A DNA stretch of 58,571 bases from Kudoa neothunni (lineage: Eukaryota > Animalia > Cnidaria). The notes beneath the pieces were generated by a model, which saw only the letters and a program-made list of their open reading frames with translations, did no database searches and was not told where the DNA came from. The stretch covers positions 11,763,708-11,822,278 of the forward strand of contig OZ199839.1 in assembly GCA_964304625.1 (NCBI GenBank), in the 5' to 3' direction. Every line of letters starts with the position of its first letter. Position 1 is the first letter of the stretch. Below are positions 18,901 to 57,655 of this stretch, piece after piece. The position numbers and the translations under genes were made by a program.

Positions 18901-19799
18901 TTAACAATGCTTCTGTTTCCTTAAGAAGGCTTTCTGCTTCCTCCACGTTTACGACTCTATAATCAGAAAACTTCAGGGTGTTTATTGTATATGTATCACG
19001 TTTGAAACCATTTATATATTTTTTGTATGAATTGGAAGTGTCTACAATATTTTGCAATTTGGTTCTGAGTGTTTCAAAATAGGGCTTTATTTCAGTCAAC
19101 ATGTTTTGATAGAATGGATTAATAAAACCATCTTTGATTGGTTCTAGTTTTATAATCCTTTCAATAGGATCATGATCGCATCTGAATAATTTTCTTTCTT
19201 TTTGTTTCAGCTCGTGTATATGTTTGATGATTTTAGGTTCTTTAGCCTCGATTTCTTTAATTTTTCGTAAAATTTCACTTGAATCAATCATACTATCACA
19301 TTTGGTTTCATCGTTTCTCGATAAATATTCATGTAGTTGTTGTGTCGATGTTAAGAAAGCAACACTTCTCTTATTGGCATCATTCAACATATTGATAATC
19401 TGAATCGAATCCAAGAAACTTGAATAACATGAACCAGCTCTCGTAACATTGTAGAATGCAGAATATCCTTTTGTTAACAAGGTTAAACCCAGATTTTTAA
19501 ATTGAGTATTATTGTATATTGGATATGTATCCATCTTAATCTCGGTATACTTCAAGCTGACCATTGGGCGGATTTTTTCAAGAGTATATTCTGGGCGATT
19601 AGTTTCTAAATTTTCATTTATTTTATCAACCAATTTCAATTGTTTCGTAAATTTTGTAGTTAATTTGGTTAACTCCTCATGTTTTAGTAGATATTTGGTC
19701 CTCTTTTCGCCATATTTATCGCATTTAGTATGCTTTTGTTGAGCACCAGAAGTATCTTTTGTTGTAATCAAGATTGCGAAAACTAATATAATCAATCAT
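15970..19799 (-). CDS. Large (~1,280 aa) intronless coiled-coil type-I membrane protein: signal peptide, helical stalk, TM and short basic tail. Interrupted by +1 lesions at the start and at ~17675 (possible pseudogene or assembly indels)
   Basis: ORF 17654-19795 starts with hydrophobic LIILVFAILITTKDTSG. ORF 15970-17661 ends with TM YIIAAAVIATVCLVVGGAIL followed by RYKNLKKR. Both are K/E/N/L-rich and heptad-like. Removing one A from the minus-strand GAAAAAAAC at ~17672-17680 fuses them. Confidence 0.8.
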
Positions 19800-32406: not shown

Positions 32407-35400
32407 ATGATGTGGAAAAATATTTCTTTTACCGTTTTATTATTTATCACCTTAGCTTCAATAACTGGTAACAATTCTTAATTGGATAAATTTTAGTATA
32501 TTTTTTGACGTCATTATTACATAGAGAATAACATGGAAGAATGTAATATTCACTATGCATACAAGTCTAATTTGGATGTGTTGGATGTGTGGCTAAACAT
32601 TCCAGGACAACAAAAATATATCGAAATAAGCTGGAAGTTGGTAAATTCAATAAATAGAACTCCAATTCGTATGTCTCGGAAAAGTTTGATTAAATGTGAA
32701 AGTGACGGTGTTTGTCCAATGTCAATTTACGACCTGAGCAGATTAACACCGTACCTACTTTTCGTTGAAACAGACGTGTGTTTACAAAAAAAGCCGCTAA
32801 AAATATTTCGAAGTACGTAACCATATATTAATTTTAATTTGAATAAAATTAAATTTGACTATTTTTAGGTGAATTAAACATTGATATTGATTATAGTATA
32901 AATGAAGACTCAAAAATCGTACTTCAAAGTGAAATCTTTTCATCACAAAAGATATATGTGTCACATTGAAGTAAGTGAAACAAATTATCTCGGAATAACA
33001 AGTTATAAAATTCAATCTTTTTACAATTATTGTGATGAACCATCGTATAAAATACCACTGAATATGGATAGTGCTAAGTTGACCATAAAAATAAAGGGTA
33101 TGAGCTACCCCATTAAACTTAAAATTAACAGTGAGCCAATAAAAATTTCGATGGTGTTTCTGAATTGTTTTAGATGAAATATTTAAAGATAATCCTCATT
33201 TATATGATGGCAAACACAAAGATGGCTTCGTTATATATTTTAATAATGAAGCTATCGAAAATTACGATTTATATTTGATTAATCATTTCCATATTAACGA
33301 AGAAACATCTTTAGCTTATCAAATAGAAACCAAATGTGGAAAAAATAATGATTATCAGTGGGGGAAAAAATTTTTATGTGCTTATCGCGAAGGTTTTTCA
33401 AAGTTTCTCAGATTGGAGAACAATGAAAACAAAAGAAGTTTTCTAATACACACACATAAACGTGAGATAATTATTACAGTGTTTAATATATTTGAATATA
33501 GGTAATGAGGGCGACGATATAACTGTGATTAATGGATTCGGTCAGTTCAAATTAATTATTGATGACTCAAAATTTGATCTAAATAATACTGAATACATAT
33601 TGGATAGATATAATGGAAATAAAATAGAGAAAAGATTTAATTGCCAAAAAGACAACAGGAATGGTTGCATCGGATTTGTCGTTGATAATGCTATTATTTT
33701 TGAAAAGGAATTTTTAAAAACGTATAGAATGAAATTATTTTATGGCACTCAAGTTTTTGAAAAACTAATTCAATGGAAAACTACATCAATCAAATTTTAT
33801 CATTCAATTGGATCAAAAAATATTCATGTTTGGTCGAATATACCAGAAGAATACAACCTGAGTTGTTTATACACATTGACCAGGGTTGATACTTTGTGGG
33901 ATGGCTATCACGCGGCGGGAACATACGATTCGTATGGCCCACACTCTCATATTGGCTATAAATCATGCCAAAATTACACAATTGACCTTTCGTCTATCAC
34001 TCCCAAAACGTTGCACATATATATACCTCAGCTGAATTATGTGGATTCCATAAGAAATATATATGAAAAATATAATTTCCGAATTTCGAAATCCAATGAT
34101 GGTCTCAAAATAGCAACAGTTTTCAAAAAAGAACATTGTAATATAAAATTTGTTGACTTAAAGAAAAAACTAAAATACATGTATTCCAACAAAAGTATAT
34201 TCAGTCAAGGTGATGATGCATATACCTGTGAATCGAAATATTCGTATCCGTCAGGCGTTGATAAGAAAAATATTATTGGAATTTATTTAAAATCACTTGA
34301 AACAGACAGCGTCTTCTACATTGATCTACTTTACGGTAATAAACACAATATGATGTATGATAATTTATTAAAACATATATTAGACGATGAAGACTTCGAT
34401 GTACAAATTAATAAGTCACCCTCTGGCCAACTGAGCCTTCAATTTACAAAACCATTGGATATTACTTCATTAGATTATATAAAGATATTTCAAGTGGATG
34501 GTCATAAAAATGACTTGCAATTATTTCATAAGAAATCTAATTGGATAACTGATGGGACGGGAAAATTGTCCCAATTAGAATTGGGAGTATTATTAGCTAA
34601 AACTGTCTACTTGGAGATAAAAGATAAATCAGGTTCCATTTTTAACAAAATTCTATCATTGCGTAAGAAAAATTTGGTTGATGTATTTATATTAAATCTT
34701 ATTTTAGCTGACATTTCGGTGGATCCTTATGTAAAAGTTAATGAGGGAAATGTTGAAATTATTCCTCTGAATGTCACAAATGTTGAAGGAGAATGTAAAT
34801 TGGTGTTAAATTCTGACAATGGATCTGACGAATATACACCATCAAAATTAACTTATATCCATAAATGCAACGAAAAACTAGTTATTGAGAATTTAAAGGA
34901 GAGAAATGATATTTCTATCTACAAAGACAATCGACCGATTGTTAGACAATCCTTTACTTTATGTATGATTATATTATTCCATTAAGAAAGTTCAAAATAA
35001 ATATTTGAAATATAATAATTACTTTAAATATTTACTGAAATATAAAATATTAATTACACAATTAAATTTTCGTATTATTTATAATATTTGAATTACGTCT
35101 TATAATTGATTATTTAAAATTATAAATATAATTAATTAAAAATTATAATTTTGATGAATTGTAGATAACAACAATTTAATAACTGGAATGGAATACTATA
35201 ACAATACAATTTTGATTCGTCACAAAAAACAAGGAAATGAAGTCTCAAAATGCACGATTGAGGTTAAAGAGACTAATACGAACGGAAAAACATTATTCAA
35301 AAAATGTCATCCTGTTACAGATTCCTGTAATGCAATTGAAGATTGTGATAACATTACCATTGATATGGTATATAATAAAAATTTTCATCTTAAACTTTCC

Positions 35401-35774
35401 GTCAACGAAGATGTGGAAGAGATGACTGTACAAGAAAGTAATTAATGGAAATGAATAAAATGCTACAACTAATTATTAAATGATAGTTCCACTTGAGATA
35501 ATTTGGGAACACCAATGGGAGAACAACTCATTGAAAATATTCCACCGAATGGCTGGTATTGGTTTTAAATGCTGTTACAAACTCGAAGGTGTGACCGAGG
35601 GATCAAGCAATGAAAAATTAATTGGAGACGAAGATTTTAGCAATTGTCAACTTGCGCAATGCAATAATTTAAGTTTTACTCCAAAATCTTTTTCGAACTT
35701 ATCAGAAAAATATGTAAACTTAAAGTTTAGTTATCAAATTGAAGGGGAGAAAACTACTGAACATTACGATATAG
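32407..35774 (+). CDS. Modular secreted/surface protein, exon cluster 1: signal exon 32407-32467, then exons 32525-32812, 32869-33130 (contains a +1 frameshift), 33174-33461, 33502-34662, 34708-34962, 35165-35437, 35487-35774; optional terminal mini-exon 35806-35825
   Basis: Signal peptide MMWKNISFTVLLFITLASIT. All introns are GT-AG and phase 1 (40-57 nt, one of 202 nt) and join the short ORFs in frame. Modules are beta-rich with Cys pairs (CESDGVC, CQLAQC). Confidence 0.82.
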
Positions 35775-36105
35775 GTAATTATAATTATTAAAGCATTAAT
35801 CTCAGGCCTGCCCAGAAATATTTAAATAAAATCATATATAATCCTATATTTAATGATTTGATTTTACTATTATAATATACTAGAAAAATACTTTTTAATG
35901 AATAATATTACCTATTATTTTCAAACTTATAATTAAATAATGTATTTATATGAATGTTTTTTTAATTAAAAATAAAATATATAAATTTTACGTAATTAAT
36001 TTGATAGGAACACAAATATTTTTTTCTCTTGTTGTAGCTTGTAAATATTTTTTTACGTTATACGTAAAATGCTTCAATATTTATGAGTAGATCATTACTT
36101 ATTCA

Positions 36106-36145
<40 letters not shown>

Positions 36146-37528
36146 TGTCGATACCTCATTTAAAATATCATTTAAATATAAAAATGATGACGACAAATTT
36201 CATTACGTTTTTATACATTTATTATTTTATTTAAATTAAGGTATATAATTAAAAATTTTGTTTGTACATACCGCCATTTTGACATGTATTTTGATTTATC
36301 TAATGATTTAAATTATTTTTATTGTTATATCAAAATTTTTACGATGATAAATAATTATATAAACTTAATTTTTTCTTTCCTTAAAATAATTGATAATCCC
36401 GACTTAAATGAGTGTTTAAAAAGCACTTGGTTTGGATTTTAATGTCTTTAATTACTAAATATAAACTATCGTGAACAAACGGCTTTTCCGGGGATGGGCT
36501 AATTCAGATAAAAAAATATATTAATCCCTTTATTAAACCCCTTGTTGAACAGAATAAACTCATACTGTTTATTTTAATATCATCCTTTTGACATTCATGA
36601 TGAGTAAAATAAATGTTTTAATCGTGTTGTGATATTTGGATTCACCTCATGCAGAGATTATGTAGGTAGAAAAATTTTAAAGAAAAAAATATTCTCTATT
36701 TTTCAACTTACCGTCGGTTGATTAACCATTTCGTATCCAATTTTTTTATTTCCCTCCATAATTTTTTTAAATATATTATAAGCACTCATTATCCTCTATT
36801 TAATGATTTTATCGTGGTAAAAATTAAGTAGACATAATTTCAGCTGTTTTTAATGTGGGTACTAAGGTGGACGTTTGGCATGGGTGATACAACCACGATT
36901 TCGTGTATTAATTTTCTCACAATAAAAAATAAAATAAATTGGTAATTTTCTTAGATACCTGAAATATGATAACTTAAAAACAATCTCAATCTTTCACAAG
37001 ATGTGTAGACATTTCCTTGGCAATAGTCGGTGATATGATAAAATTTAGGATTATTGCTATTATCAAGTGAATCGATATTCTGTGCCACAAAAAAGCATAT
37101 AATATTTTATTATGGTATTTATTTTCGGATAGAATTAATGAATGGTCGCGGACGAGGTTCAAACCTCTGTGCCATAACTTAAAACGTGGTGGCGCCATAC
37201 CGCTGTATTGTCGATCGCGCATTAGTTGACTTTGGTTACAACTCTTATACCAGCAATTAAGGAGTTTTCTAAATCTTTAAATTGCTGTAAGGGCTCATAT
37301 TAAATCCCAAGAAAAACAAAAAATTAATTAAAAAATTTGTTACTCCAATATACGAAAGAGAAAATCAATGGAATAATTAATCGGATTAATTGTCGTTAAT
37401 CTATTGTGGAATAAATTCAAAAATAAATATTGCTTTTTACGATTTGGGTTCTTGTTTGGATCAAAAATTTTGATTTCGACGAGAGAAAATCATATTTATA
37501 ATAAATATATGAGGTTTAGAAAATAATA

Positions 37529-38808
37529 CAGTGGGTGACGGGTAATACGTAATCCCTTCGGGACTGGAGAAAAAGTGTGAATTAGCCAGCAAAGGTGGAT
37601 AATACACACTTTTGGAGTGCATGCGTGTATTCAAAATTCAATTATTTTTCGATTATTATTGTAATAACCTGCTCTAGAAAACAAATAATAGTTTAACTTG
37701 TTTGTTGTCCTCCATGTATACGTTATACAAATCTTCTTCTAAGTTTTAAGTGTAATTTTAGAAACAAATAGAACCATTTTTTGTTTAAAATTCCTTTATA
37801 AATTCGAGACATTTAAATGGTTTTTGTGATTTAGATATTTATTAATTGATGGGTTCTAAGTAGGATATACTAATGTGTCTTGGATAACTGGAAAATTTAG
37901 TTATTTTTTTCATCGTCTTTGTTTCGATATGTAATATTTTTTAAGTGATACTTCAATAATGTTTTAGGTGGTTGAAAATCGTCCTGTTCAACCGAATTAT
38001 TTCATTCTCTACTTTTAATATTTCCTGTATAGAAAATTGCAATAAAATTGAATCATGACTTGTCTTAGTTAAATTTCAACCTCATCTCGTGTTTATAAAT
38101 TTTCAGAGTTATTTTTAGGCGTACATTCACCAACGATTTTCGGATCTCTATAAGGGTTTAACCTACGCAGATTAAACTGTTGTTTAAAACCTTACAACCA
38201 ATCATTGCTAACATCACAGACATTTTACATAATTTTCTTCACAATTTCATCACATTTTTAAATAATTTCCTATGAGGAATAACTCTGAAATATTTGGCCT
38301 TATTCATGTAATCCGTCCGCGGATTTTTCATCGGATTCAACGTTTGCTCAGTTGTTTAATATTTACAGTTCCATTTTTATCAAATCGCATAATTCGTAAT
38401 TTCATGGATAGGTTATAATTCAAAATTAATATGAATATATCAACATAATTTTTAATGGTATAACTTTTAAGTTTGTTATATTAACTTCAATTATTTTATT
38501 GTTCTGTATTTTGTATTTATTATAAACATTTTATGAAGATTTATATCAACTATATATACAAATCTAATAGTTCCTGTGGGCGATTTTAAAGTCAATTTCA
38601 GGGAAAATTATGATGCGTATTACCCAACAATGCGTTTAAATTACAATATTTTATTTATTTTTTGTCTGGAAATCATTTTTCAGATGTAAAATCTCAATTA
38701 AATTAAGTTTATAAACGTCAACTTAAGTAATGTGTTCAGCAAGTTGTAAGCTCCATGAAATAGCGAATGTACGTATTAGCTGTACTGCGTATTAAACGTC
38801 ACCCACTG
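37529..38808 (-). mobile_element. pogo/Tigger-like element, highly decayed
   Basis: TIRs cagtgggtgacgggtaatacg / cgtattaaacgtcacccactg with TA on both sides. Minus-strand remnant VSNDWL*GFKQQF resembles the CENP-B HTH motif SxGWLxxFKxR. Confidence 0.78.
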
Positions 38809-40865
38809 TACAACAAATATCAAGTGAACTTTGAAAAACTATGTCTTATTTTATATATAAACCTTTGGCCGATAGAAAGTAGATTTCATTTTCAGATAGA
38901 AACGCACCTAATATAGGAATTTAAGAATTTTCAAAATATATTACTAAAAATACATCAATGTAGAAACAAATTAGTCAATTAGGGGTCTTGAAATACCCCA
39001 GTCAGTATCGGTAGGGTTAAGGAATCCAAGGACTGTTAGATCAGAACCCATAAGTCCTCTAACTGTCCATATTTTAGAGAGAAATTTTAATCCTATAAAA
39101 TTAATAAACAATCATGTATGATTATCTATGCTTTGTAACTATCGTCGATTTCGCGATCATCTATCGATTGGCCACTGCGTATTATACAAGTCTTCAAACT
39201 TGTCACTAGTAGGTAACTCGGATGAGGATGCTTCCGATTATTCATTCACCTGTCTCTTTACTTGCTTGATGTTTGATATCTGATGTTTATATGAGAAAAT
39301 TATATTAATAAACACAATTTCTTCGTTTATTCGGATGATTATTTCATACGTTATTATCGTATTTCTAATTATTCCCGTTGGTTTCACTTTTTACTTAATG
39401 CTAATTTCATCTTTTCAAATGATCATTTTATACGAATGTTTAATATTTTTTCTACTCCTATAACATTATTATCTCCAATATAGCTTCAAATCTTAATAGC
39501 AATTATTGAACTAAGGTAAAATTTACTGCAATATTCTGCTGAAGTTGACATATGTTGGTTTGTATAGATTTATGCATATACGAGTGCTTTGAATAAGGTT
39601 TGAATTTTTCTCGTAAAATTTCTTGAACTTATGCATTGACTAAATTTAGCATTATTATTAGTTGGAAAATTATATAGAATATAATCGCAGCCAGAAAATG
39701 TCTTTTTAAAAGAAAATAAATATTAATGTTTCTCACAAAAGATATAAATGCAAAAACGATAAATTGTTAACTTTATCAAGAAAATCTTAATAAAATCTAA
39801 AACCACCAATTTCATATAAAATTATTTATTTTAATTGAAATTTCATTGTAAAAAGTTTATTTACAATCACTGTTGCAAGCCAACCCCATTAACAATGGCT
39901 AACATGTTCTTAATTAACTTATCGTATATATCGATACTTTTTGTTATATGCACTCTAAACACTGTGAATTGAAAATCACTTAAATATGAATTTATTTAAA
40001 CAAAATATTAAACTATGATTGCATATTTGGTCGATTTGTTTGTAGAAGCCAGCTAAATTGTTTTCTTTTTAAAATTTAATTAGTCGTAACTTGATTATTA
40101 TTTGTATTTAAAAAATTAAAAGTTTTGGTGTAAGCGTTATTATGAAGGATATCCCCTTCCGTTGAAATAGCCAGTCCTCACATGGGGATTAAACAGATCC
40201 GTCGCTATAACCAATGCCTATTTTTAATCCTAAAGTTCATCCACACTTACGCAGTTCCCATTTTGAATCCCTGAAAATCCTATTTATAGTCGATTCATCA
40301 AGTTTATTTTTTAAAGTCGGCCGTATTTAATTATTCGTGATCATTAGATGCCTGTACTAGTGACAAAAAATAATTGAATACAATAAATATTACATTCACC
40401 TAGATATTATTATCAAGTACATTATCTACTTCCTTATTTGAAAGGATTAATATATTTTTTTGTTGTTTTTGTATGATTATCCATAATAAATATATCCATT
40501 CTGGGGTGAAACTGCATATTTTGTATTAATATTTAGTATTTTAATTAAACTAAAACGGTTGCCAATATGACGACAATTTAGAAAACTATGAGTTTAATCT
40601 GTTCAGCAAAAAATTACATAAAGAGACTAACACATTTATTATAATTTAAATTAATCAATTTCTAGACACGCGGGGGTCTTCGCGTTTGTATATTTATAAA
40701 AATATAATTAAACATATCATTTTAAATTAAAAAATTGAAATGAATGTAGTTAATTATTAACGCTTTATGCTTTATAGGATAAAATTGATTTCAAAAAGTT
40801 TATTAAAAAAATGGGACTGGTGCCTTAATTTAAATTCAACATGATATTTCTAAACTATACTTTAG

Positions 40866-41143
40866 GTCATACCAAACACGACTATGTTCTCACAAAAGCA
40901 AATGACTCAGTGTATTACAAACGTATTTTAAAACTAAAAAATGCTGCTTCACTAAATCAGAAGTGGTATTTACGAAAAAACGGAGTTATGACTGAAGTGA
41001 CTCAAAAAATTGGCCAAATTAATAGCGGTCCAGTGATATACAAATCTCTGAATCCTGAAATCGGGCAGGAGTACAAATTGGCTGTTGATGTGGGACCTGA
41101 CGATGCAAAATTATTAATTTACTACTATCCTGAAAAGAATTTA
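40866..41143 (+). CDS. Isolated ~92-codon exon (phase 1 in, phase 0 out), beta-rich module
   Basis: Acceptor tttag|gt cat acc at 40865, open frame HTKHDYVLTK...YYYPEKNL, donor |gtatgt at 41144. No convincing start exon of its own. Confidence 0.6.
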
Positions 41144-41438
41144 GTATGTTATGAATTTTATTAATCAATCTTTCCATAGTACTTAAAAAAAGGATGCCAA
41201 TATTCATTAATTATTTTTAACATTCTAAATAACTTGATAAGTTACACCACCCAAATAAAATTGGAATGTATTTCGATCCCACATTTTTTTAATATTTGCA
41301 TAGTAAATATAAATTAAACTTTTTATACAAATTTTAAGCGACATCCATTGACAAAGAATTCTAAAAGAGCGAAATAAAATTGCTAATATCGCATCGCGCG
41401 ATTAATTGGAGAATTCAAGTTTGGATGATTTAATTATA

Positions 41439-42356
41439 CAGTAGGTAACCAATTTCGCGCACTTTTTTAAAACCTATTTAGTTAGAATATTGATTGGTCA
41501 TTGTTTATATAATATGTTTCTTATAATATTTGAATCAAAATTGTTATAAAAATTATTTTAAAAAGTTGCTAAATAACGTAACTAACGGTCACGTGATTAA
41601 CCAATTTAACACACTTTTTTCGGGTACTTCTTGTTTATTATTTAGTTAAATCAATATTTAATGCCATAAAACTGCCAATGTATTATATTTTAAAATATCT
41701 ATTATCTCGACTCCTAATGGCATCCTAGAGATGAAAAATAAAATAATAAAAACCTATAAATGTTTGTAGAATCTAAAAATAGAAATCATTTGCATGCAAG
41801 ACAATTTAATTCTGTTGATGAAAATGTATGAGTGGATTGGGTGTACACGAAGCAGAAATATTGTAGTAAGCGAGGTCACGATAATCATCAAGAGAAATCA
41901 ATTGATCAAAGAAAAAGGTTTACCTTCGTGTGAAATTCGTGGTAGGTTTCGCTCTTTTATAAAAAGTTCCAACATTAAAAATTCAAATTTTATTAGCTAA
42001 TCTACTGTTGCTACATCTGAAACTACTTCGTTATAGACCAATTAAATCAGAACATTTTTAAAAGATACTCTGAAAATTATATTTACAATGTAGACGAAAC
42101 TGCCTTATTCTACCGATAGCAACAAGAAGAGTATTTCATAGATCGTTGAAAAATATTTTTGTGTTGTTAACACGTTTCTCGAGTTTTAAATATCGTTTAA
42201 AAATTAATTAGCCTTTATAAACGCAATTTAACTATTATTAAATGTCAATTTTTTCTGAAATGACTGCGCACGCGAGTGCGTGAAATTGGACGTGGCCGGT
42301 TTTACGTACTTTTTTTCTTGGTCCCGAGGGGATTACGTGAAATTGGTTCCTTACTG
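41439..42356 (+). mobile_element. pogo/Tigger-like internally deleted element
   Basis: TA|cagtaggtaaccaatttcgcg ... cgtgaaattggttccttactg|TA; the pogo catalytic motif IYNVDETALFY lies at ~42081-42113. Confidence 0.82.
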
Positions 42357-43389
42357 TATATGATTGTTTATTCAATGTTTTACGGATTAAATTTCCTTAA
42401 ACTTAAAATATCAATTTTATTTTTAACAATTTTACCAAAAGAAACCTGGGGTCGATTTATACTCCATTTTTATTTAGGTGTTTTTGATTTAAGTTGTTTT
42501 CTTTTTGAAAATACGAATACTTTATTATAATTTTATAAAGATCTCTATAATTTGGAAGATTACATGAAGTCAAAATCAGACTAACCTAAATATTTATGTT
42601 TAAAAAATGACCCTATAACATGTGTGGGGTCGAAATACACCCTATTTTGTTTAGAACGTCAAATGAATTTATCATTAATGGATTAATAAATAATGTACTT
42701 TTTGAAGTCACTTATTAAAATTAAAAAATATCATTTTGAAATAAGAACAAAAATGAATTCATTTACTTTCGATCAGGAAATTTAATTTATTCATAATATG
42801 CATATTAATTATCATAAATAAAAAAATGTTTTGAGATTAATATTAAATCATGATGATGTTTATTAAATTATATATATATATATATATAATTTGAAATTAT
42901 TCCAAAAAGGATGTCATATATTAGCATCAAAAAATAATCATTCTACTCTGCTTATAAAAATATATATTTTTTCTAAAGTTCTATAATATAAAAAATAATA
43001 TCAAATATGAACGAATCCCGTAATCTGCTAACAAGAAGAATATAAATAAAAAAGAATATTTTGAACTAAATCTGTGAATAAATAATTAGTCAACTACAGT
43101 AAACTCTCGATATTGCGTAACTTTTTTGAATGATGGATAAGTTATGATTTGGCAAGGAATTACTTAATAACGAGACTTTAGAGTGATTTATATTCCATAT
43201 ATATGTATATATAGAAATTCTTAATAAAAATATGTTTTACATTTTTAATTTCTAGAATTAGATAATATACAAATTGTATTAACTTTTCATTAATCGGGAA
43301 GAATAATTCTTGTATTGTTTTCATTAAATTTTTGACAAAATTTTATGGCAGTTGTTTACACAGAAAACTATTTATTTATGTATTTTTAA

Positions 43390-45045: not shown

Positions 45046-45126
45046 ATTTTTAATTTGAATGTATTATTTCTATTTAAATAATTAAGTTGTGGATAATAAG
45101 GTAATTTTTTAAACATTATTTCATAG

Positions 45127-47757
45127 GAATCTTTGGTTGAAAAAATAACTGAATATAAGGATCACATATCAACTATAAAACTGGTCCCTGTAGAAGTTGA
45201 AAATCAGCCGAAATTCATAAAATATTATGTACTTGTAAATGGAATATTCAATGAGGACGAGAAATTGAAGAGACAAGTTAGGTGTCATAAGAGCCAACTA
45301 CCCGATCAAAAAGACTGTTCAATCGATTTCCATGTTTTACCAGATCAAATAGTTAAACTTTGTTTAATTGTAAATGAAAGTATAACATCTTGCAAAATCT
45401 ACAAATCCAGTAATTAAATATTACATTTTTATTTGATGATATCTCTATCATTGAATTATTTAGAATATTACTTTCAGAATATTCAATTATTATCAATTGT
45501 TGATAATCATTACAAAATTGCAATATCATTTAATTCGAGTGTTGAAACCAAATGTTATTTTTCATTTGATTTTATCGAAGAAAGAACCATATCTTCTAAT
45601 CCGATAAATTGTGTATGTGATGAGAACAAATATGAAATCACATGCTCTAGTTACAACCCATATTTGGTTGTTGGGCGCAATAGAATGATTATGTTTGTGT
45701 TGGATAATAAGTCTGAATTTTTTGGTACTCTCAGACTTTCTGTCCCAATGCCTCTCAGTATTTTATATTATTTCAATATATTATAAGCTCATAATAGAAA
45801 CATACTGGGATAGAAATGAATACTCAGTAATTCATTTGGAAAATCAGGAAAAAGCGATAATAAAATTTAATTCATTTAACTGTGAATATGCTGTTAATGA
45901 CAATAATTTGGATAAAAATAGCGAATATGCCCCTATCATCACGGGGGAAAAAATAAACGACACTACTGCTAAAGATGCTAGTCACCGTGATTTAACTTGT
46001 CCTAATATCTCAGCATCAAATCTACAAGACAATAATAAGATACGATTAAGTTATTCGTCCAATGGAAAAAATTATTTATTTCAATTAAATAGTAACTTTA
46101 CTTGATTTTATAAAATTTTCAAAATTACATATTTAGGGTTCATTAAATTACGTCTAGTCGATTATAATGCAATAATCTTAGGGCGTAGTGCTCATTTTTT
46201 TGGAATATTAAATAATTTTTTGGATTATAAATACACGTTTAATAGTGTTCTCTACTTAACTCAATCTGAATACTTTGAAGAACAAACAATAAGTACAAAC
46301 ATTCAAGATATAAAAATTGTTTGTGAAGGTTATTATTGTTCAAGTTTTTCCTCCAAAATGACTGATGCCAATTTCCTACAATATAATATATTTTTGAAGA
46401 TTTTTAATAGAATAATTAAATTTGAAAGAAGTATTATTTTTTATTAACATAAATTCTCTCAAATTTTTTTTAATAAAATAATTTTTTAGTCCCTACTCTA
46501 ATAAGTGTTGACGTCTTTGAAGTGAGCGAAAAACAGTATATGATACGTTATGGTATTGACCAGAATCTTAAAAAAATAACCATAAATGAAAAAGTTACCG
46601 ATGAATCAAACAATGTTTGTTATAGTAGTAAGGATAAAACTATTTTATGTGACCAAAAATCTTGTGAACAAAAAATCACTATCAACGACTGTATCACTCC
46701 ATTATGGTTACATATTGATTCGGAAGATATGGTTGGTTCAAGTTCTGTTTTTAAATGTAACTGAAATTAACAATTAGGAGTGATTTTATTTTCGTTATAT
46801 TTAGTTGAAGCTTTAAGAAGGACGATCCCGTTTGAGTATATAGACGACGTGGATCATAATAACTATAAAATAATATTAAAATTAAAACAAAATGAAATGA
46901 ATAAAAACTTTATTTCAAATAGTATTACGATTGGTAACAAAAAAGTAGAAGATACGTGTTTCAGTCTTGTAAATTTGGAAAGAATGGAATTGATAATGTT
47001 GGTGATAAAAGAAAATTGTTTACTTAAGGGAGAAAGAATTCGATACAAACAACCACTTGTATTGTATCCCCCTTATAGTGACACAGGTAACAATTATCTT
47101 AACGTAATAAATATAATAAATTATTTATAGATAAGTTATATACCTATGGAAAAGCGACTATTAACGAAACGTCTATAAAATTACATATTTATCTCCCAAT
47201 TCCAACAAATTCATTAACAGTGTCGTATATGAAGGTTACAGATTTGAAGACAAATAATATTGTTTTTAAACACGTCAAAGAAATAATTGTTAATTGTTCT
47301 GGAAAGACGTGCACACACGAAATAAAAATCGAAGAAGAAACTATTTCCGATGAACTTGAAATATATTTTAGTCTTAAGGAAACTAGAAATTTAAAGTTTT
47401 TCAGAAAAAGTACAGTTTTGATATCATTGAATAAAATATATAATTTAATTAGATTCAAATCAAAATCTAAATTATGTTGATTTTTCGTATAAAGCTGATA
47501 AAATATTCGTTTACTTGGAGGGTGATACAATTGTACCTGGTGTACCGCTATTCTTAGGAGAAAAAAACAACTCAACATATGCATCATCAACTATCCAAAC
47601 CAGTGATGGAAAATATTACTTCACGTTTTCTCAGAAAACCATTTTGGATGGAACATACTTCACATTTCCTGGTAGTGACAATAGAATAACCATAAAAAAA
47701 TATGAAGGTAGCTGTCATTTAATAATCACAGTTGTTCTTAATGTTATGACAGACTGA
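45127..47757 (+). CDS. Modular protein exon cluster 2: exons 45127-45409, 45464-45757, 45798-46091, 46137-46430, 46490-46756, 46805-47086, 47131-47409, 47453-47707 (optional stop at 47755-47757)
   Basis: Seven 40-59-nt GT-AG phase-1 introns join the ORFs in frame without stops. Exons are 85-98 codons with CxxxxC motifs (CEGYYC, CDQKSC, CSGKTC). The first acceptor is phase 0 and no intact start or signal exon is adjacent. Confidence 0.85.
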
Positions 47758-48235
47758 GATATTGAGTATTTATAATTATCAAATAGAAATGTTAAGATTT
47801 ATACAATTTTATGTTATTAATGTTAAATAAATTCTAAACTAAAAATTAAACTTCTTGCATATTAGTTAACGCGACAAGATAACTCGTAGTTACGCTTTAA
47901 CCCTCCAGGTCAGTGTTGGGTCAATTGGATCCCAGCGCATACCTTAAAAGTCTAAAGCTCGAATAAGTAAATAACAAATCTTATTCGTCCAAAATTCAAT
48001 GTATTTTTGTAATCCTTTTTTCAAAATCATGAACAACTTTATTCCAGAATTAAATAACAATTACACCACGTCGTTTTGGGATCCAATGGACCCCTTGATT
48101 TCCTTTTACAAAATATAAGGAAATATTATTTTATAAGATTTATTATATTTATGAAAATTTATATCGAGTAACTATTAAAAAAATAAAGAAAAACTCTATC
48201 AGTAATCCCTGGCTGCATGCACAAAATTCGTTTAA

Positions 48236-51200
48236 GGCGGGTGCGTGCCGGGGGTAATTGCTTTGGGTAGGCAGTCCGTGCCTTGGTATTAGACATTTTC
48301 AATCAAAATTTTTATTGTTTATATTTGCATATTGGAAACTAAAAAATATCTAAATTATAAATAATTTTCAAGAAAATTAATTTGGATTTAATGTTTAAAA
48401 ATTATTGTTCAATAAAATTTTTAGTAACTTATTTACCGGGAATTGTAATTCTTAGATTGTATTTGTAGGCTAAAGATAAAATATTAAAATTATATATCGA
48501 ATTTTTCAGGATTTTGAAATGTTTACTTAAGTAAATTAATGCTTATTCGTGAGAACGCAATTAGTTTAAATTCCTCAGATTTATTTGGAATGTGGACGTC
48601 TCTTTATCAAATTAAATGGGCTACAATAACAATTTAACGATATATTTTTATATATTAACGATTTATATATCATGAAATTAATAATACTTCATTCTTAATA
48701 ATTATTATGGAGATCATATCTAGTGAACGCCATAAAACATTCTTATTTTAAATTTGCAACCCTGTCCTATGATATATAAACATCTAAATTGGGTAATGAA
48801 GAGATTACTTTTACAATATTTTAGAATCCAAACCAATAATGTTTTGATAGGCCAAAATAAAGTGGATAAATTATTGCTATATGTTAAAATTATAAAAATA
48901 TTCGAAAGTGGGTGTTTTGTATCTTTCCACTTATGAAGGAAATACATTCTTCTTTCTTTTTCTGTAGCAAAAATATCAATCACCTTTTCATATAAATTAA
49001 AAGTTGGGTCTTGTTCCATCTGGTTAAGTCTTTCTTTTTCAATCGATATTAATGCAAGGGAAGAAAACCGTTGGTTGGCCATCCATTTTCTAGTGTAGCT
49101 TTTAATTCATTTCAATGCAGAAAACGACCTTTCCACAGAAATGGTTGTTGCAGGAATCGTCAAAATTAATTGTAACAATTTGACAACTTCAGAAAATGTT
49201 TGTCCCAGTTTATTTTGGAAGATAAAATCGAGAAATTTTGTAGGGGACTTTTCATTGAATACATGAGCATTATAGATTCCAGCCAAATCAGTTTTCAGTC
49301 TTAAAATGTCAACAAATTTTCCATAATTCCTTTGCAGACTTTCAAAGGTCCTCATGTCAATTTAGTACGATAAACTGTAAAAGTTATTTCCATTGATCAA
49401 TGAAATAAACTTGAGATTTTCGACATTATTAAATCTCGTTCTGAGATTCTTTATTATATCACTGACTATTGCATCAAATAACCTCGCTCTTTCATTCTTT
49501 ATGTCATGTTGAGTGCGAAGGATGGATCTAATTAAGTTATTTTCTTGGCAATATTATTTTTCGAAATTATAATACAATAATTCAAATTTTGTGTGCATAT
49601 TCTCAAGTTTCGTTACTGTAACATTGATTCTTTCAATACAATACGCAATGTCTATCTTTTTCGTGTGCAATATATTGACGAGCGCGCCAGTTAACACGGA
49701 AATTTCATTATATATCATCAGTAAAAAGTATGTTGAGTCGTTTTTATCAAATTGTAAAGTCCACTACTTCGAAGTAAAATGTCTGAATCCCATAAAGAGG
49801 GATCGCTGTTTATATTGCAGAAAAGATTGTGAAGATCACGGTGATACTCTAATATCATCTGCACTAATTTTGAATATGAATTCCACCTCGTTGCCGCTGC
49901 TGTTTGAATGCGTCTCCGCACAATCTCAGCAAGAAATTGGACCTGTTTAGTTTAATTTTTGAAAAAAGAGGAAAGTGCTTCATTGTTCCTGAAAAAGCTC
50001 ATACAATCAGGGATAAATTTGGCCGATTGTGACAACACAATATTTAACTTAGAGGCATAACAGTGAGTAATCAGCGCGGTCGATATCTTCTGTCCAACTC
50101 TCCACTGAACTCCGTACCTATCGCCCCGTCCTACGTTTGTGCGATTAATTTCTCTTCAATGTTGTATTTATATATGTTTTTAAATACATATTCCGTTACA
50201 CCATCCGCTGTTCTGCCACGAACAGTATGAAATCCAATGAAAACATCCTTAATTTCCGATCCCAATACGTATCTTAATATTGTTGAACATTGAGATGTGC
50301 ATGAGGTATCGGTCGTCTCATCCGATTCTGTCGCAGCGAACGGAGCCAGTCCTAATTCCTTTTTAATATTATTCTCAAAAACCACCTTTATAGCCTCAAT
50401 CAGATCATTTTGAATCCTGTTGGAAATGCCAGAAAAAACAGATGAATTCTATAAATGATACGATAATTTTTCGTCAAATTTTGCGGTATAATTCGACAAC
50501 TCCAAATAATTACCACGATTTAAAGGCAGCTTGTTTTCATTATCACCGCGAAAAGTAAGTTCTTACTTAATCAAAAAGCAAATTGCGCGGATCAAAATTT
50601 TCAATATCTTTCTGTTTTCCCTAACATTTTTATCGTGAAGTTCAATCGAAATACTCTTCTGTTTATCAAGAAACAATTCTACGCGTATAGATCCAAATGT
50701 TTTCCATAAAACTTGATTTTGATAGTGTGTTGCGGATTGCTCATGCTTATTTAAAGCGATTGGTAAATTATTTAAGTTGAAATATCCCACTTTGATCCAC
50801 ACACTTTCACTAGTCACTGAAAAAGGCAAACATGGGAAGCAAAAAAGCCTTATTGTTGTAGCACACCCACATAACCCCTCTTTTTTCTCATACCACGAAT
50901 TATTAAACGTCCTGATAATTGTCTTCCCTTTCAGTTGTTTAACTTCTTTAAGACCAGGAGTCAGACTACCATTTCTTATAATTTGTAATTTATCTCCATA
51001 AGGAAGTTTTGAAAACTCTTCAAGACATACATATTTGAAGAGATGAAATAAGATTAACAGGGGTACGCGCCCTTATGACAAGTAGGACAATAATTAGTAT
51101 TAACCTTAGGTTATATTCCTAGTATAGTTGTCATATGGATTATCTTATTTCAAAGATGTGCTTTAATTAAAATAAAGAAAAAGTTGAAGGAACATAATTT

Positions 51201-51554
51201 ATTTGAATAAATAATGCACGCACAACCGGGACGTTTAAAGCAGATCACGTGACCCAGCAGTAGGCAGTATAAATTCTGTCTATGGTCGGCCAGTAAAAAC
51301 GCAATGGTGCGCAGAATGAGGCGGCACGTGATAGTCAAGAACTTTTAAGCCGAATTAATTTAGCCATTAGAAGGCAGAGTCGACTCGTGCCTATCTTGCT
51401 ACTAATTCCTCGAATTTTTTGTAGTTTTATAAGAATATTTGAATAATTATTATGGTCTTGAGATAAAAGGGATTTTATCTTTATAAAATTAATTAATTTT
51501 TCCCCCAATTTTTATGCAACAAGATAGGCACTGCCTACCCTGACGGAACGTGCC
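48236..51554 (-). mobile_element. hAT transposon, ZMYM1/Tip100-like, decayed
   Basis: TTF-type finger (GCATTIRLFCFPC..F..SVW.K.G..KHEQS..H), FRGDNE..NRGNYLEL, DETTDTS..QCSTILRYV, TRWNSYSKLV, TIPATTISVERSFSALK, R.SSLALISIEK. The subterminal motif gggtaggcagt is inverted at both ends (~48264 and ~51530). Confidence 0.88.
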
Positions 51555-52678
51555 CAGCGTTGCCAAACTTGTCTGATTTCGGACAAATCAGCCAAAATTG
51601 TCCGATTTTTATTCTTGTTCTTCGAAATATTGAGTAATCGCAAAACAATGTTTCATAGATAAGGAGTTATTGAAAATTAACAAAAAATGGAATTTAATCG
51701 TTGATGATTACATTACGAGAAATCTTCGAGTAGATAATTTTATACTTGGAACAATGCTTTATTTCATATTGAGATATCTGCAATAGAAGTTCACCAAACG
51801 CAAGATACAATTAAAAAATTTATTATTTCTTAAAGCCCACCGAACACAAAATTTGAACATAAATAAACATGCCGAAAATTTATCAAAATGAACACATTTT
51901 TAAATTTTATGCTCCTGTTAAGACCGACATTTTGGATTTTTTACCATTATTAACGGCAATACACAGTTTTATCATGACCGTGAACCATTTTGGAATTATT
52001 ACGAAGATATTTTTGTGCTTGAATTAAAAAAAAGACTCTGATATTGGTGATATTTAATGCTAAGTTATCATTACAAGTGTTTGTTATCGATTTTCAAAAA
52101 TTCTAATTTTAAGTATTACGTAAACAAATTAAAATTTAACAAAATATTATCTACTTGGCTAATTTTTCTTAATTTGAATGAATGAATAAATGAATAAATA
52201 GTCGCACATAAAAATAAAACCTCATCTAGGTATAGTTGTTATGTGTTAGTCAAAAATAGAACAAAGACTGTAATATAATTGTTTGAAATTAAAGGAATCA
52301 AATAGTCTCAAAAACAAAGTTTGTTTGATTAAATTATTAACAATCGTCTTTTTGGCCATTGTTTATCCGCAAATAAATTTTAATTCTATCGGAAAATACA
52401 GCACATCTTTACTTGCTCTAGCTCTGATTAACGCTTCTCCTTAGAAAACATGTTCTCTTCTGGAATTATTGAAAATATCAGCGGAAATAGAATGTTGTGT
52501 TCTACATTAGATAATCTTGTTCGAATGAGGAAATTTTACAACACATCGACCAAATTATGTCATAAATTTGAAGTTTCTGAGTTAATTATAAATTAAAGTA
52601 ATATTTATAAATATAATAAAATATTGGATCCGTTTTTACAAATAATTATGATTTGTCCGATTTGGGGTGGCCATGATG
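51555..52678. mobile_element. Small decayed TIR element (hAT-like)
   Basis: cagcgttgcc...tcggacaaatc at the left and gatttgtccga...tggccatgatg at the right. No intact ORF. Confidence 0.4.
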
Positions 52679-54985
52679 CTGCACGTACCTAATTTAAACG
52701 TGCTATTCTTGTTTAATTACAGAGATACCTCATCAGATTCTGTTGACTCTTACATTGATTACTTAAAGTATGATGTACCCTCGTCAGTTCGCATATTTTC
52801 TCGTTGCGGAGAGCATAAAAAATATATCTGAAAATCGTTTTGTGAAATAATCGCTGTTTGTAATTATTTTGTGTTTCTTGTTGACATTACATCGCGTTGT
52901 TTACAATATGATAAATTGCCATAAAATTTTTAAATTATTTGTTTAGATTAAAAAAGGCAATGGCTATTGCAACGGGAGTAAATTACTCCCAAACTAACAT
53001 GTTTATAAAAATTTCAACTTTATTTTCCTAATAAATAATTTTTTCGCTTAATAATTTCTAATCTATGGGAGAGTATGGTGGAATTTTACAGGCTGTTACA
53101 GGAAATTGAGCCATTACATAACGTCATTTTGATTTGATAGATCACCGAAATAATAACATAAGCTTTCTGATACAATAAACTATTGTAATTGCAAAAATTT
53201 ACTGTAATCGTATGCTTTCTGTAATAGGAATTACCAAGTGCAGGAGCACGCGCTATTATGTAAGACTTAGTAAACTAATGGTATTGGTTCCTCTGTTGGT
53301 TAACATCTCTCTGATTTTATACGTTCTATTATTGAAAATTATAACCTTATTTCTTAAATATTTTTTTTCATAGTTTATAAGACGAATTATTTGTACTAAT
53401 GTATAACTCTTTCTATTTAAAGCTATGTTTCAATTTATAAAAACGATAATAATTTTGTATTTAGATTGATTTATGTTGAACAAGGGGATCTTAAAAATTG
53501 ATTATCAGCTAAACATATTGTAGTTATTAAGAAACAATAACAATAATAAGTTGGATGAAATTTTAAATTGATGTAATGCCACTTACTTAATTTTGTACAG
53601 TACATGTTTAGTATCTAAAAATTCCGGCGATATAAATGAAATCCAGTTAAGCGAAATATTCTCGAACAATAAATCTCTAAGCATTATTACAGCTAGTAAG
53701 TATTATATGTAAATGAAGATTTAGATTTATCACATAGAAACCCATTTTTATAAAACTAAAATAGTATTATTGAATTCTCATCAAATAAACCATCAGCTTG
53801 GTCTTAAGGCAAAAACAACCTATTTTTGGAAGAATAATTCGTAGTAAGCAAGAAAACCATTTCGAAATCTTAGGATGTGTATACATTATCGTGAGTTAAT
53901 TTATTATGATTTGGTATTATCTTGTCCATCTAAAGTAAAGAGCGCTGAGCGTCTACATTAATAACTGTTGGTATTTCTATAAAGAAGAAAAAATAAAAAA
54001 TTTGATTATATGCTTGAAATAACGATTCTCAATGGAAATAAAAAATTCCCTTTGTGTTATTAATAGCCGAATATATTGCAGTATGATAAAAATAATGTAT
54101 CGTTATATAGCGAAAAGATAGATCATTTTACATGTAGAATATTAGACTCTAAAAAGTAAAAATATACCATTTTAGGGGTTATGTAAACAATGCATTATTT
54201 ATTATCTTAGGAGTTATAACGCTGCTTGAATCATATGCATCCCAGTAAATTAATTTACATCAATAATTTTTGATATATCACTTTGTATTATACATATTAC
54301 TCAGAATTCGGAAAAAAATAATTACATTTATAAGTTAAAAATTGCTAATGGAGGAATTAAAAATAATTTTTTACCACCAAATTCATTACCATCAATAAGA
54401 AAATTTGATGTCTTGGATTTCTTTTATAATAGTTTAGGTTTTTAGGGAAAAATCATTTTTTAGGAAATTGAAGTTGAAATTTTTATAAACATGTTAGTTT
54501 AGGAGTAGTTTCCTCCTGTTGCAATAGACAATCCGAACATGCGGATTAAACGGATCCTTTGCAATATCCATTGCCATTAAAAAAACCACATCAATAAACT
54601 TACAAATATAATATTTCTAATGTAACGTATCAACGTGAAAATGTACGCATTCGCAAACAATAAGTAACCTTAATAATTGAATATTTATTCCAAATCTGCC
54701 AACTGAATTTTTCTCATATTTCATCAATTAGTGCTAAATAAATTTTTGAAAACAATTGTATGAAATTAAAACGTGTGGTGCATGTATACTCCATTTTTAT
54801 CCGAAGCGTGTAGATTTTTTAACTACTTAGAGTGTAAAGAATTTTGAGTTCATTATGTCTTGCAAAGATATTATATGAATGGGTTAAGATTTTTAATTTT
54901 ATAAGTCCATTCCGGATAAGGCCAGGATTTCGCGCTAACTATACATATATTTTTATGTTACTATTTCACCATCACTGTAATTTAG

Positions 54986-57655
54986 AAAGATTCAGCTATG
55001 AAATGGAATATTATTGGGATTCTCAAAACCTGAATATTAAATTGATACTAAATTCAACACAGACATATCCAAATTTAAATCTTAATATCTTATTGCGTGA
55101 GGAGAATCAAAGGAAAGAAAATGCAACACCGCTATACAAAGATATTGTTTGTACTACAAATATATGCAGCTGGGAATTGGAAAATGTCCGCTCAAAAAAA
55201 AATCTGATTTTAACGTTTTCTTCGGGAGAACTTATCAGTCCTGTTTCCTATTTTATCATGAATGGTAAATTATCACTAGTAGCATGTTAATATTTTTTAT
55301 TTCCTAAAATGTTTAGATACATGCTCATTCTCTGGTGTTAAGCAAAATTTTGGGTCCACAGGCGACGTTTCTCTAATAATAAATGTAACAGATGCTCAAC
55401 TAAATGAGTTAGAAGTCAATTTTTCTGTGTACGAAACGACTGTAGAGAACACAGAAGTAGTGCTAAAATCTACTGAAGTGATTCCTTGCAATAGATATGA
55501 ATGCATTTTGGATATTTCAAGCCTATCACACATAAAAATCTATGATGTTCTTTTAAGTATGCCGAATTGCAGCCATAAAATGAAGTTCAAAATAAAGAAT
55601 TGTATGATTTTTATAAAAATTTATTAATTAATTTTGTCTATCAGCCCCAAGCACTTACAAACTAGAATACAGTTATGACAATCCTATCTCCAATAAAGCT
55701 ATTCTTAACGTACAATTGGAACTTACATTGCCCTATGAAATAATTTTTTTGTATTGGACTTTAAAATCGAGTTCAAATTCAGTAATTGTTAAGAATTCAA
55801 TTACATATATCGATCTGATAAAACGCAACGGGGTATTTTCGTTTAAAATACCAGATATTGATATAGACTCGGAATATTACATTGATTTTTCATCTGATTA
55901 TCTTTTTGAAATGCCTCACCAAAATTTGATTGTTAAATGTATATTTACAAATTTATTTCATATTATAACTTTAATTAAGCGGAAATCGACTATGAAATAA
56001 TACCGAAATGGAACAATGGTCACTTCTCAATGGTACTAAAATTAAATGTGCCGATAAACAGATTAGACGTTAGTGGTGAATTATTCATCCTTAAAAGGAC
56101 GAATTCTAGCATAATTGTAAAAGATAAAATCACTTTCGATGAAGAATTATATTGTGATCAAGGCTTTTGCAACTATAACTTTGAAGAGGTGACCAAAAGA
56201 GAATATTTCAAAATCTCGGTCGATTCGTATTTATTAAAGCACAAGGAGCCATTTATTATCAATAAAGGTAAATTATTATTAAATAATTTGGATCTTCAAA
56301 AAATTTGTTTAGAACCTACCACGTTTAGTATTAACCACAAATACGAAAATAAGGAATTGTTGGTTGAGTTTACGATGGAAAATGAACTTGAAGAGGTATT
56401 TATGAAATGGAGCCTTTTGGACACAGAAAACAATTCGATCAGTATTTCGAACAATCAGTACAAACAGATGGAGGTTGACAATAATAAATTTACCTTAAAT
56501 CTTGGAGAAATGGATAAAACTAAAAATTACAAATTAACTATTGAATCCGAAGAGCTTAGTGGGGATAAAGAATTTGTAATAGAAAGTAATAACTAAGAAA
56601 ATTATTATATATTCTTGTTTTTAAAAATAACATTGATGAAATATAATGAAAATATATTATCTAATCTAAAAAAAATTTTCCATGTTGAATTATAAATGAT
56701 AATTTTAGAGAGATTTGAATATGCATTAAAACATAAATGGAATTATCACAAACTCCAAATAATACTAGAAATTTCTTCGAGTGTACCTCAAGCAAGTCTT
56801 ACTATCGACTATTCCTATTATGAAAAAAATAAAAATATTGGTGATGCGATTAAAGATAAAAAAACAATTATATGCGAACAAAATATATGTACATTTGAAA
56901 TTGAAAAAATAAACTACAAAGTTGATCACATATTTACATTACATGCCCCAAATCTAGTCGATCACCTTCAGTATGAAATAAAGAGAGGTGATTCAAAACT
57001 CAACAATGTGTTTCCGTTTTCTTAATTTTATTATATTTAGAACCATGCCCATTGTCAAGTATACAACAAAAGTCGTTTGAAAACAATAATCTCACTCTGA
57101 TAATTCAACTTTTATCAGCATACGAAGAGTTAGTCTTTGATTATTCAGTTAACGGAGCAGATGAGGATACTAGCGTACTCACTCAGGGTTCAAATCAAAA
57201 GATATTATGCAAGTTGACTGAATGTGAATTTTCCATCCCAGGCGTAATACTTACAAAGTCTTATAATGTTGCTGTGAAAGTACCACTGTGTGAGAATGAC
57301 AGTATTCTATCAATTAAAAAAGGTATAACATATCATTCATAAAAATAATAAATTGTTCTAGCTCGAAGCGATTATACATTAGCATACAATTATCGCAAAG
57401 AAGGGTTCAATGAAGTTACACTTACTCTACAATTGCAGCTTTCACTTCCTTATGATAAAATCAAGTTGGGATGGTCTCTGAAAACAGGTTTGAATTCAAA
57501 GGTCATTAAGAGTTCATCTTCGATGACTGCGCTGACTAAAGAGGTTTCCTTATTTTCATTATCTATACCAGAAGTTGATATAAATAATGAATATACAATT
57601 GAGTTCATTTCCGAATACCTTGTGGAAAAAATAAACAGAAATATCCTAGTAGAAG
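54986..57655 (+). CDS. Modular protein exon cluster 3: exons 54986-55264, 55317-55601, 55645-55938, 55980-56267, 56313-56585, 56709-56987, 57041-57322, 57362-57655; open at both ends
   Basis: All exon lengths are multiples of 3 (273-294 nt) and all introns are GT-AG phase 1 (39-53 nt, one of 123 nt), with no stops. CxxxxC motifs (CTTNIC, CNRYEC, CDQGFC, CEQNIC, CKLTEC). Exons 6-8 repeat exons 1-3. Confidence 0.88.

Follow-up and report, generated by a model that had tools for sequence, protein, structure and literature searches.

What kind of protein is encoded by a long array of similar-sized, mostly closely spaced exons, and is its diversity generated by splicing? This question is raised by a 58,571 nt stretch of the genome of the cnidarian parasite Kudoa neothunni (assembly GCA_964304625.1, contig OZ199839.1, forward-strand positions 11,763,708 to 11,822,278), which is referred to here as the window, and in which the + strand carries such an array between positions 32407 and 57655. 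An initial annotation, made from the sequence alone, had described the array as a lineage-specific set of immunoglobulin (Ig)- or fibronectin type III (FN3)-like domains, which could form variable surface antigens or adhesins via exon skipping, duplication or conversion. Our analysis indicates that the 24 exons of the array are probably the 5′ two-thirds of a single giant adhesion G-protein-coupled receptor (GPCR) gene, predicted to encode a protein of approximately 3,800 residues with approximately 35 β-sandwich modules.

Exons were identified by scanning for AG...GT-bounded frames in phase 1, which gave one clear candidate at nearly every open stretch, and all searches, alignments and folds were run on single exons, with no spliced protein being joined. 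The resulting model consists of a signal-peptide exon (exon 1) and 23 further coding exons on the + strand, and 19 of these 23 are 255–294 nt in length, a multiple of three, and phase 1 at both ends (phase 1-1). The four exceptions are exon 3 (262 nt), exon 5 (1461 nt, phase 1-1), and exons 8 and 9 (278 and 283 nt), with the last two being separated by a phase-0 intron of which both the donor (GTAAGT or GTATGT) and the acceptor are conserved in paralogous genes. All 23 introns are of the GT-AG type, and 20 have a length of 39–202 nt, with those between modules mostly 39–59 nt; the three long introns (5.1, 4.0 and 7.3 kb) contain transposon debris. The acceptors are mostly TTTAG or TATAG (TAG end in 19/23), and the donors mostly start with GTAA or GTAT (18/23). 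The array region is AT-rich (GC content approximately 27%), with a GC content of 30.4% in exons and 16.6% in short introns. Stop-free stretches of at least 85 codons were found 25 times on the + strand, versus a mean of 1.8 and a maximum of 7 in 100 dinucleotide-preserving shuffles, and six times on the - strand, where a transposon is located. The number of exons proposed in the initial annotation (about 24), their sizes and their phase-1 GT-AG flanks were borne out by this model and by the excess of open stretches.

All 24 window exons are collinear with those of three tandem paralogues (genes 1–3), located upstream on the same contig (C2). Gene 3 (C2:11743007-11762293) is free of gaps, and runs from a signal-peptide exon 95% identical to exon 1 through the same exon series to a GPCR proteolysis site (GPS) and a seven-transmembrane (7TM) domain; the three introns which are long in this copy measure only approximately 0.3–1.2 kb there. 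Gene 1 is also gap-free, and its matching exon series continues into a putative GPCR autoproteolysis-inducing (GAIN) domain and a 7TM domain. The genome contains approximately 15 such receptor loci, and relatives of the family were found on three public contigs from metagenome and Logan collections (L018, L037 and L038), which have the same exon-per-module layout with 27–71% protein identity and 19–28% GC, and which hold almost the sole relatives among 1.84 billion proteins. The predicted splice junctions are supported by this exon structure, shared with paralogues and relatives. A division of the array into several separate genes was also considered, as suggested by a stop shortly past the donor of exon 7, a hydrophobic read-through tail followed by a stop after exon 16, and the phase-0 start of exon 9, and was rejected based on the collinearity with genes 1–3 and the conservation of the phase-0 intron.

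The window corresponds to exactly one contig, with 200-N gaps on both sides (C2:11763508-11763707 and C2:11822279-11822478). The next contig (L004) carries, on the same strand, a further seven modules plus the end of another, then several short exons and a GPS exon, after which three exons encode helices 2 to 7 and end with a stop codon. As the contig that follows the gap starts partway through a module exon, some array exons are missing from the assembly or the join is wrong, and the window is presumed to be joined to its own 3′ end based on the scaffold and on analogy with the paralogues. The exon preceding the first transmembrane helix (TM1) matched the Pfam GPS family (PF01825) with an E-value of 3.5e-4 (21.5 bits), and the corresponding exon of a relative matched with an E-value of 9.8e-4; a Trp, a Cys and the motif C-x-C-N-H-T-T-S-Y-A are invariant in 12 copies, a relative included. 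Comparison of the TM5–7 exon profile, built from nine paralogues, with the PDB gave 21 matches, all to adhesion GPCRs at helices 5–7, with ADGRF1 being the best (E 1.8e-5), and the TM2–3 profile matched adhesion GPCRs only, albeit weakly. The last exon of this copy on its own matched the Pfam family 7tm_2 with an E-value of 0.18, and the last exon on L037 scored 24.0 bits, versus a cut-off of 20.6; on L037 the modules, GPS exon and 7tm_2 exon follow each other in the same order on one strand. The predicted seven-helix domain is, by these profile matches, of the adhesion-GPCR type (family B2). Candidate GAIN exons, of suitable size and composition, are present at approximately 6020–6805 of L004; they are conserved among the paralogues, have 34% identity to their counterparts on L037, and gave no match in Pfam. 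With a GPS and a 7TM domain downstream, the array is read as the ectodomain of an adhesion GPCR, and the antigens or adhesins of the initial annotation, taken as a free-standing system, were not supported.

Comparison by BLASTP placed 47 module exons of two clusters, this one and another, in a single family, to which exon 2 and the last eight exons of the window belong. The family alignment displays an early Tyr or Trp, alternating hydrophobic strands and a C-x4-C pair, and the modules of the 3′ part form a super-repeat of five types (A-B-C-D-E, hence ABCDE modules). An AlphaFold2 model of exon 22, with the family alignment as input, reached a predicted local distance difference test score (pLDDT) of 92.1 and showed a seven-strand sandwich with Cys residues on both sides of a hairpin turn. 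Searching this model against 48,161 chains with VIA-align gave Z-scores of 7.9–9.2 for the top 50, nearly all of which are fibronectin type III domains, with the top rows having a root-mean-square deviation of 2.4–3.4 Å across 78–92 residues; Foldseek and the ESM Atlas agreed with FN3, but weakly. The predicted fold of the exon 22 module, the sole module modelled, is that of an FN3 domain.

Searches by sequence hardly detected the family. There was no match to Pfam fn3 on any exon (best fn3_6 at E 0.1), no Pfam family on the raw open reading frames (ORFs) of the array, and nothing meaningful in a PDB sequence profile search with the module family, and hhalign of the module family with a multi-FN3 protein gave a probability of 3.7%. 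The module profile matched only 10 of 1.84 billion proteins at E ≤ 0.001, of which four are multi-FN3 proteins, giving indirect support for FN3; four of the other matches are short, exon-sized proteins, three of which come from contigs L018, L037 and L038, where collinear exons of the same receptor family are present. In the window, 11 exons belong to the FN3-like sequence family (exons 2, 13, 15 and 17–24), ten module exons (4, 6–12, 14 and 16) failed to join it by hhalign or iteration of a hidden Markov model (HMM), and exons 3 and 5 were outside this test; an ESM Atlas look-alike search with exon 10 gave nothing usable. Genome-wide, at least 119 module matches were counted, nearly all at receptor loci. 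These results sustain the initial annotation in part with regard to the modules, as the early Trp or Tyr and the CxxxxC hairpin are both found in the family alignment, with the Cys pair flanking the β-hairpin turn in the model, and the structure check it had proposed gave an FN3 sandwich for exon 22, while the genome-wide count it had called for yielded the family of at least 119 modules over approximately 15 receptor loci. The proposed Ig/FN3-like tandem-domain family thus stands as an array of one-exon-one-domain modules invisible to Pfam, with FN3 seen in the model of exon 22 and the family tie seen by sequence in 11 exons, but it does not extend by sequence to the other module exons.

Within the ectodomain, conservation is highest over the first approximately 290 residues of exon 5, which have many invariant columns in five sequences and 45–87% identity, and may represent the head of the receptor. 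At approximately 15 loci, the GPS-7TM unit is preceded, 11–38 kb upstream on the same strand, by a homologue of exon 5. The head gave no sequence match in Pfam or the PDB, word-indexed protein searches with the whole of exon 5 and with its first 293 residues returned one metagenomic protein each, and an ESM Atlas look-alike search with the head gave nothing usable. A fold search with the AlphaFold2 model of the head (pLDDT 58) returned a generic Ig-like sandwich at residues 1–95 only, on which no claim is built, and the fold of the head was left unclassified because of the poor model.

The sequences of the paralogues point to rapid change of the ectodomain. The pooled ratio of non-synonymous to synonymous differences per site (pN/pS) for 17 pairs of paralogous exons, a comparison suggested in the initial annotation in the form of dN/dS, was 0.65, which is below neutral (chi-square p 7e-7) and signifies fast change under weak constraint, and for the GPS and 7TM exons it was 0.46. 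Between this gene and gene 3, the exons contain only one insertion or deletion (indel), which is 9 nt long and in frame, and the introns contain indels of 1, 2 and 4 nt; overall, conservation is no higher in the exons than in the intervening introns. The identity between copies is mosaic: exon 6 encodes the same protein sequence as its gene 3 counterpart, and the exons in the middle most resemble those of genes 2 and 3. Beyond the gap, L004:201-7994 and the tail of gene 1 (C2:11686038-11693839) share 96.6% identity over 7.8 kb, introns included, and the similarity ends at the stop codon, a pattern that points to gene conversion, to unequal crossing-over or to an error in scaffolding. ABCDE-type modules number 15 in gene 1, 10 in gene 3 and at least 16 in this copy. 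Such mosaic copies and differing module numbers therefore show that diversity is generated at the DNA level, and we infer that the diversity of the family is mainly genomic rather than a product of RNA processing, arising by duplication of exon blocks, conversion among the approximately 15 paralogues and fast amino-acid change. The duplication and conversion of modules envisaged in the initial annotation are visible between the copies in this mosaic identity and in the gene 1-like tail. As a separate observation, the 39 nt intron at 57323-57361 is 100% identical to C2:11753943-11753981 in gene 3, and its flanking exons are only approximately 80% identical.

A number of observations weigh against the assignment of the array to a single giant adhesion-GPCR gene. 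The link between the window and the GAIN and 7TM exons crosses a 200-N scaffold gap and this join could be wrong, the GPS score is slightly below the curated cut-off (21.5 vs 22.5 bits), the residue before the presumed GPS cleavage site is a Thr where this is usually a Leu, and the GAIN region around the GPS is a candidate, recognised by size, composition and conservation. Within the window, the head of exon 5 was modelled poorly (pLDDT 58), ties to the FN3-like family were found by sequence in only 11 of the 23 module exons, and exon 3 contains a frameshift in this copy. Finally, the RNA run examined had 0 reads on the locus, and the three runs which hold the locus are of DNA, with contigs passing through the introns and no joints. 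The window could, as a consequence of the gap, represent a separate secreted multi-FN3 protein, wrongly scaffolded in front of the GAIN and 7TM end of another gene, as the window is bounded by 200-N gaps on both sides and the following contig shares its 96.6% identity over 7.8 kb with the tail of gene 1, whereas the part inside the window most resembles genes 2 and 3. We consider this highly improbable, since exon 24 ends at a donor site and not at a stop codon, the same exon series continues into GAIN and 7TM in the gap-free genes 1 and 3, and the resemblance to gene 1 does not extend past the end of the coding sequence, which is the pattern expected for a duplicated or converted gene body and not for a second copy of the same locus. 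The frame of exon 3 is broken because of an additional T in a TTTT run (32937-32940, + strand), which is TTT in genes 1–3, and from the conserved acceptor at 32869 the frame reaches a TGA stop codon at 32967-32969 in the alignment; this may be a homopolymer assembly error, a very recent pseudogenisation, or be bypassed via a weaker in-phase acceptor at 32930. That this copy is a young pseudogene, a decaying duplicate which does not make a full-length protein, is in our view unlikely. Next to the stop at 32967-32969, this alternative is favoured by the neighbouring gene 2 (C2:11712144-11723908), a decayed gene with numerous stops in both the exon 5 homologue and the ABCDE modules, by the three introns swollen by transposon insertions, and by the high pN/pS, but the additional T is the sole defect across the approximately 7.7 kb which the window contributes to the coding sequence, it is located in a homopolymer, where assemblies err, the acceptor at 32930 could circumvent it, and all other exons are open, with the chance of a 95-codon open frame being approximately 2e-4.

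The single receptor gene could also be expressed as a combinatorial cassette array, in which exon skipping or mutually exclusive choice would give rise to many ectodomains, as with Dscam1 or the EDA and EDB exons of fibronectin. The confirmed symmetric phase 1-1 exons, each a whole domain, the tandem homologous exons of the five-type super-repeat, and the fast change of the ectodomain are all compatible with this, and because of the phases, skipping of any single phase 1-1 exon would keep the frame. However, neighbouring exons differ in type and their order is kept among paralogues, and they are not alternative versions of one domain part; adjacent exons follow the A-B-C-D-E series, collinear in the paralogues, instead of the clusters of alternatives for the same domain part that characterise Dscam. 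Moreover, docking or selector elements would have little space in introns of 39–59 nt, and where paralogues differ in their number of modules, the difference is already present in the DNA. Combinatorial splicing is accordingly judged very unlikely, and the fixed order, whole-domain exons and near-minimal introns fit better with the exons of the receptor gene being constitutively spliced into a stalk, like those of titin, usherin and ADGRV1.

The proposed receptor would thus start with a signal peptide, followed by an N-terminal block with the conserved head of exon 5 and a rod of approximately 35 β-sandwich modules, nearly all encoded by one symmetric phase 1-1 exon each, and of which the last third would consist of divergent FN3 modules in the A-B-C-D-E super-repeat; the GAIN/GPS region and the family-B seven-helix domain would follow beyond the window. 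It is established for adhesion GPCRs that the ectodomain engages a partner, and that the GAIN/GPS region holds a tethered agonist which is exposed to the 7TM domain by engagement or pull. In the Kudoa receptor, the head may bind a partner on a cell, matrix or host, with pull or binding passing through the rod to the GAIN domain, whereupon the stretch after the GPS site (T-S-Y-A-I/V...) would act as tethered agonist on the 7TM domain. The strict conservation of the residues following the site fits autoproteolysis and activation by a tethered agonist, by analogy with other adhesion GPCRs.

For holozoan adhesion GPCRs, FN3 has been listed as one of the modules of the ectodomain (PMC12716839). As FN3 modules and giant, repeat-rich adhesion GPCRs are both already known, the Kudoa receptor represents a known kind with a new combination of features rather than a new kind. 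It is this combination which is unusual, consisting of approximately 35 modules not seen by standard models, an unclassified conserved head, an H-T|T site, and a fast-evolving, converting family of approximately 15 loci in a parasite genome of 40 Mb. The adhesion GPCRs whose solved 7TM domains are nearest by profile (ADGRF1, ADGRL3, ADGRL2 and ADGRG4) are alike in having the GPS directly before TM1, the matching 7TM domain and a large modular ectodomain, but the Kudoa receptor is too distant to be placed in a named subfamily (best E 1.8e-5), has H-T|T instead of H-L|T, and is set apart by its approximately 35 Pfam-invisible modules and unclassified conserved head. The protein ADGRV1 (VLGR1) has approximately 6,300 residues and 35 Calx-beta repeats, and resembles the Kudoa receptor in being a giant adhesion GPCR with some 35 β-sandwich repeats in front of the GAIN and 7TM domains. 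The two differ in that ADGRV1 has Calx-beta repeats and is a single conserved gene, whereas the Kudoa repeats are FN3-like and the genes form a tandemly duplicated family of approximately 15 loci.

With regard to exon organisation, FN3 domains encoded by a single symmetric phase 1-1 exon are found in fibronectin (EDA and EDB), the super-repeats of titin, and usherin. The Kudoa array shares with these the one-exon FN3 modules, a higher-order super-repeat and, in principle, the possibility of frame-preserving skipping, but its modules have a C-x4-C pair at the hairpin, escape Pfam fn3 and are anchored by a GPCR. The Dscam clusters contain many alternative versions of the same half-domain, from which one at a time is selected, aided by pairing of intronic RNA. 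Both Dscam1 and the Kudoa gene feature arrays of similar exons, with Dscam1 being an Ig/FN3 surface receptor, but in the Kudoa gene adjacent exons encode whole domains which differ from one another, in an order that is conserved, and the introns are close to the minimal length.

What first appeared as an orphan surface-protein array has thus become a testable receptor, with a defined signalling end, made up of the GPS and the 7TM domain with its strictly conserved candidate tethered agonist, a conserved head as the candidate site of binding, and an FN3 rod of great length. The small 40-Mb parasite genome devotes approximately 15 loci and more than 100 exons to this design, and the fast ectodomain change and exchange of segments point to a role in meeting a partner which itself changes, for example the host. 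A more far-reaching scenario, which at present we regard as decidedly unlikely, is that the approximately 15 FN3-stalk receptors form a diversified repertoire for host or self recognition, created by exon-block duplication and conversion in addition to exon skipping, and read out by a constant GAIN-7TM unit. The family also provides a natural series of receptors with a shared signalling unit and differing stalk lengths, which would be useful for models of force transmission. For genome annotation, it illustrates that FN3 domains invisible to Pfam can hide receptors of approximately 3,800 residues.

The individual exons, all on the + strand, are arranged as follows. Exon 1 (32407-32467) contains the start codon and encodes the hydrophobic signal peptide in 20 codons plus one base, ending in phase 1 at a GTAAC donor, and its 95% identical copy heads gene 3. 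Exon 2 (32525-32812; 288 nt, phase 1-1) is the first member of the FN3-like family by BLASTP and HMM, where it clusters with the ABCDE modules, and a 65% identical exon is present on L018. Exon 3 (32869-33130) is 262 nt long versus 261 nt in the three tandem paralogues, and harbours the frame break discussed above. It is followed by exon 4 (33174-33461; 288 nt, phase 1-1), a β-rich module outside the FN3-like sequence family, and by exon 5 (33502-34962; 1461 nt, 487 codons, phase 1-1), which has about five module lengths and starts with the candidate head of approximately 290 residues. Exons 6 (35165-35437; 273 nt) and 7 (35487-35774; 288 nt) are both phase 1-1, with the exon 6 protein 100% identical to that of the gene 3 exon and exon 7 collinear in the paralogues. 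Exon 8 (40866-41143; 278 nt) enters in phase 1 and leaves in phase 0, with a TTA preceding the donor, which is GTATGT in this copy whereas genes 2 and 3 have GTAAGT, and exon 9 (45127-45409; 283 nt) conversely enters in phase 0, at an acceptor kept in genes 2 and 3, and leaves in phase 1.

Exons 10 (45464-45757), 11 (45798-46091) and 12 (46137-46430) are each 294 nt, phase 1-1 and collinear in the paralogues, as is exon 14 (46805-47086; 282 nt, phase 1-1). Exons 13 (46490-46756; 267 nt) and 15 (47131-47409; 279 nt), again phase 1-1, belong to the FN3-like family with HMM E-values of 1.8e-5 to 3.5e-5 (reversed control 0.1; hhalign P 6.5e-4) and 2.5e-4 to 4.9e-4, respectively. Exon 16 (47453-47707; 255 nt, phase 1-1) is not terminal, as the paralogues carry further exons after it. 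The subsequent intron 16 measures 7.3 kb, versus approximately 1.2 kb in gene 3, and contains a degenerate hAT transposon on the - strand (48720-50829; Dimer_Tnp_hAT, E 2.8e-6) with broken ORFs, which is not part of the gene product. The FN3-like modules of the super-repeat then begin with a first copy of each type, namely exon 17 (type A, 54986-55264), exon 18 (type B, 55317-55601), exon 19 (type C, 55645-55938), exon 20 (type D, 55980-56267) and exon 21 (type E, 56313-56585), and continue with second copies of type A in exon 22 (56709-56987), the module modelled by AlphaFold2, type B in exon 23 (57041-57322) and type C in exon 24 (57362-57655), which has a GTATAT donor and is followed by the later exons on L004. 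In the neighbouring gene 2, the GPS and 7TM exons are open despite the decay of its exon 5 homologue and modules.

Elsewhere in the window, two long ORFs (563 and 713 aa) on the - strand at 15970-19795 have 8 bases in common, and encode sequences rich in Lys, Glu, Asn and Leu with a coiled-coil appearance and a hydrophobic end, without a Pfam family; these may represent one orphan gene for a membrane-anchored protein with a frame change. Remains of transposons are also found, with FLYWCH and MULE transposase sequences at 2739-4198 on the + strand, and a copia-like Pol β-barrel domain at 13372-13824 on the - strand.

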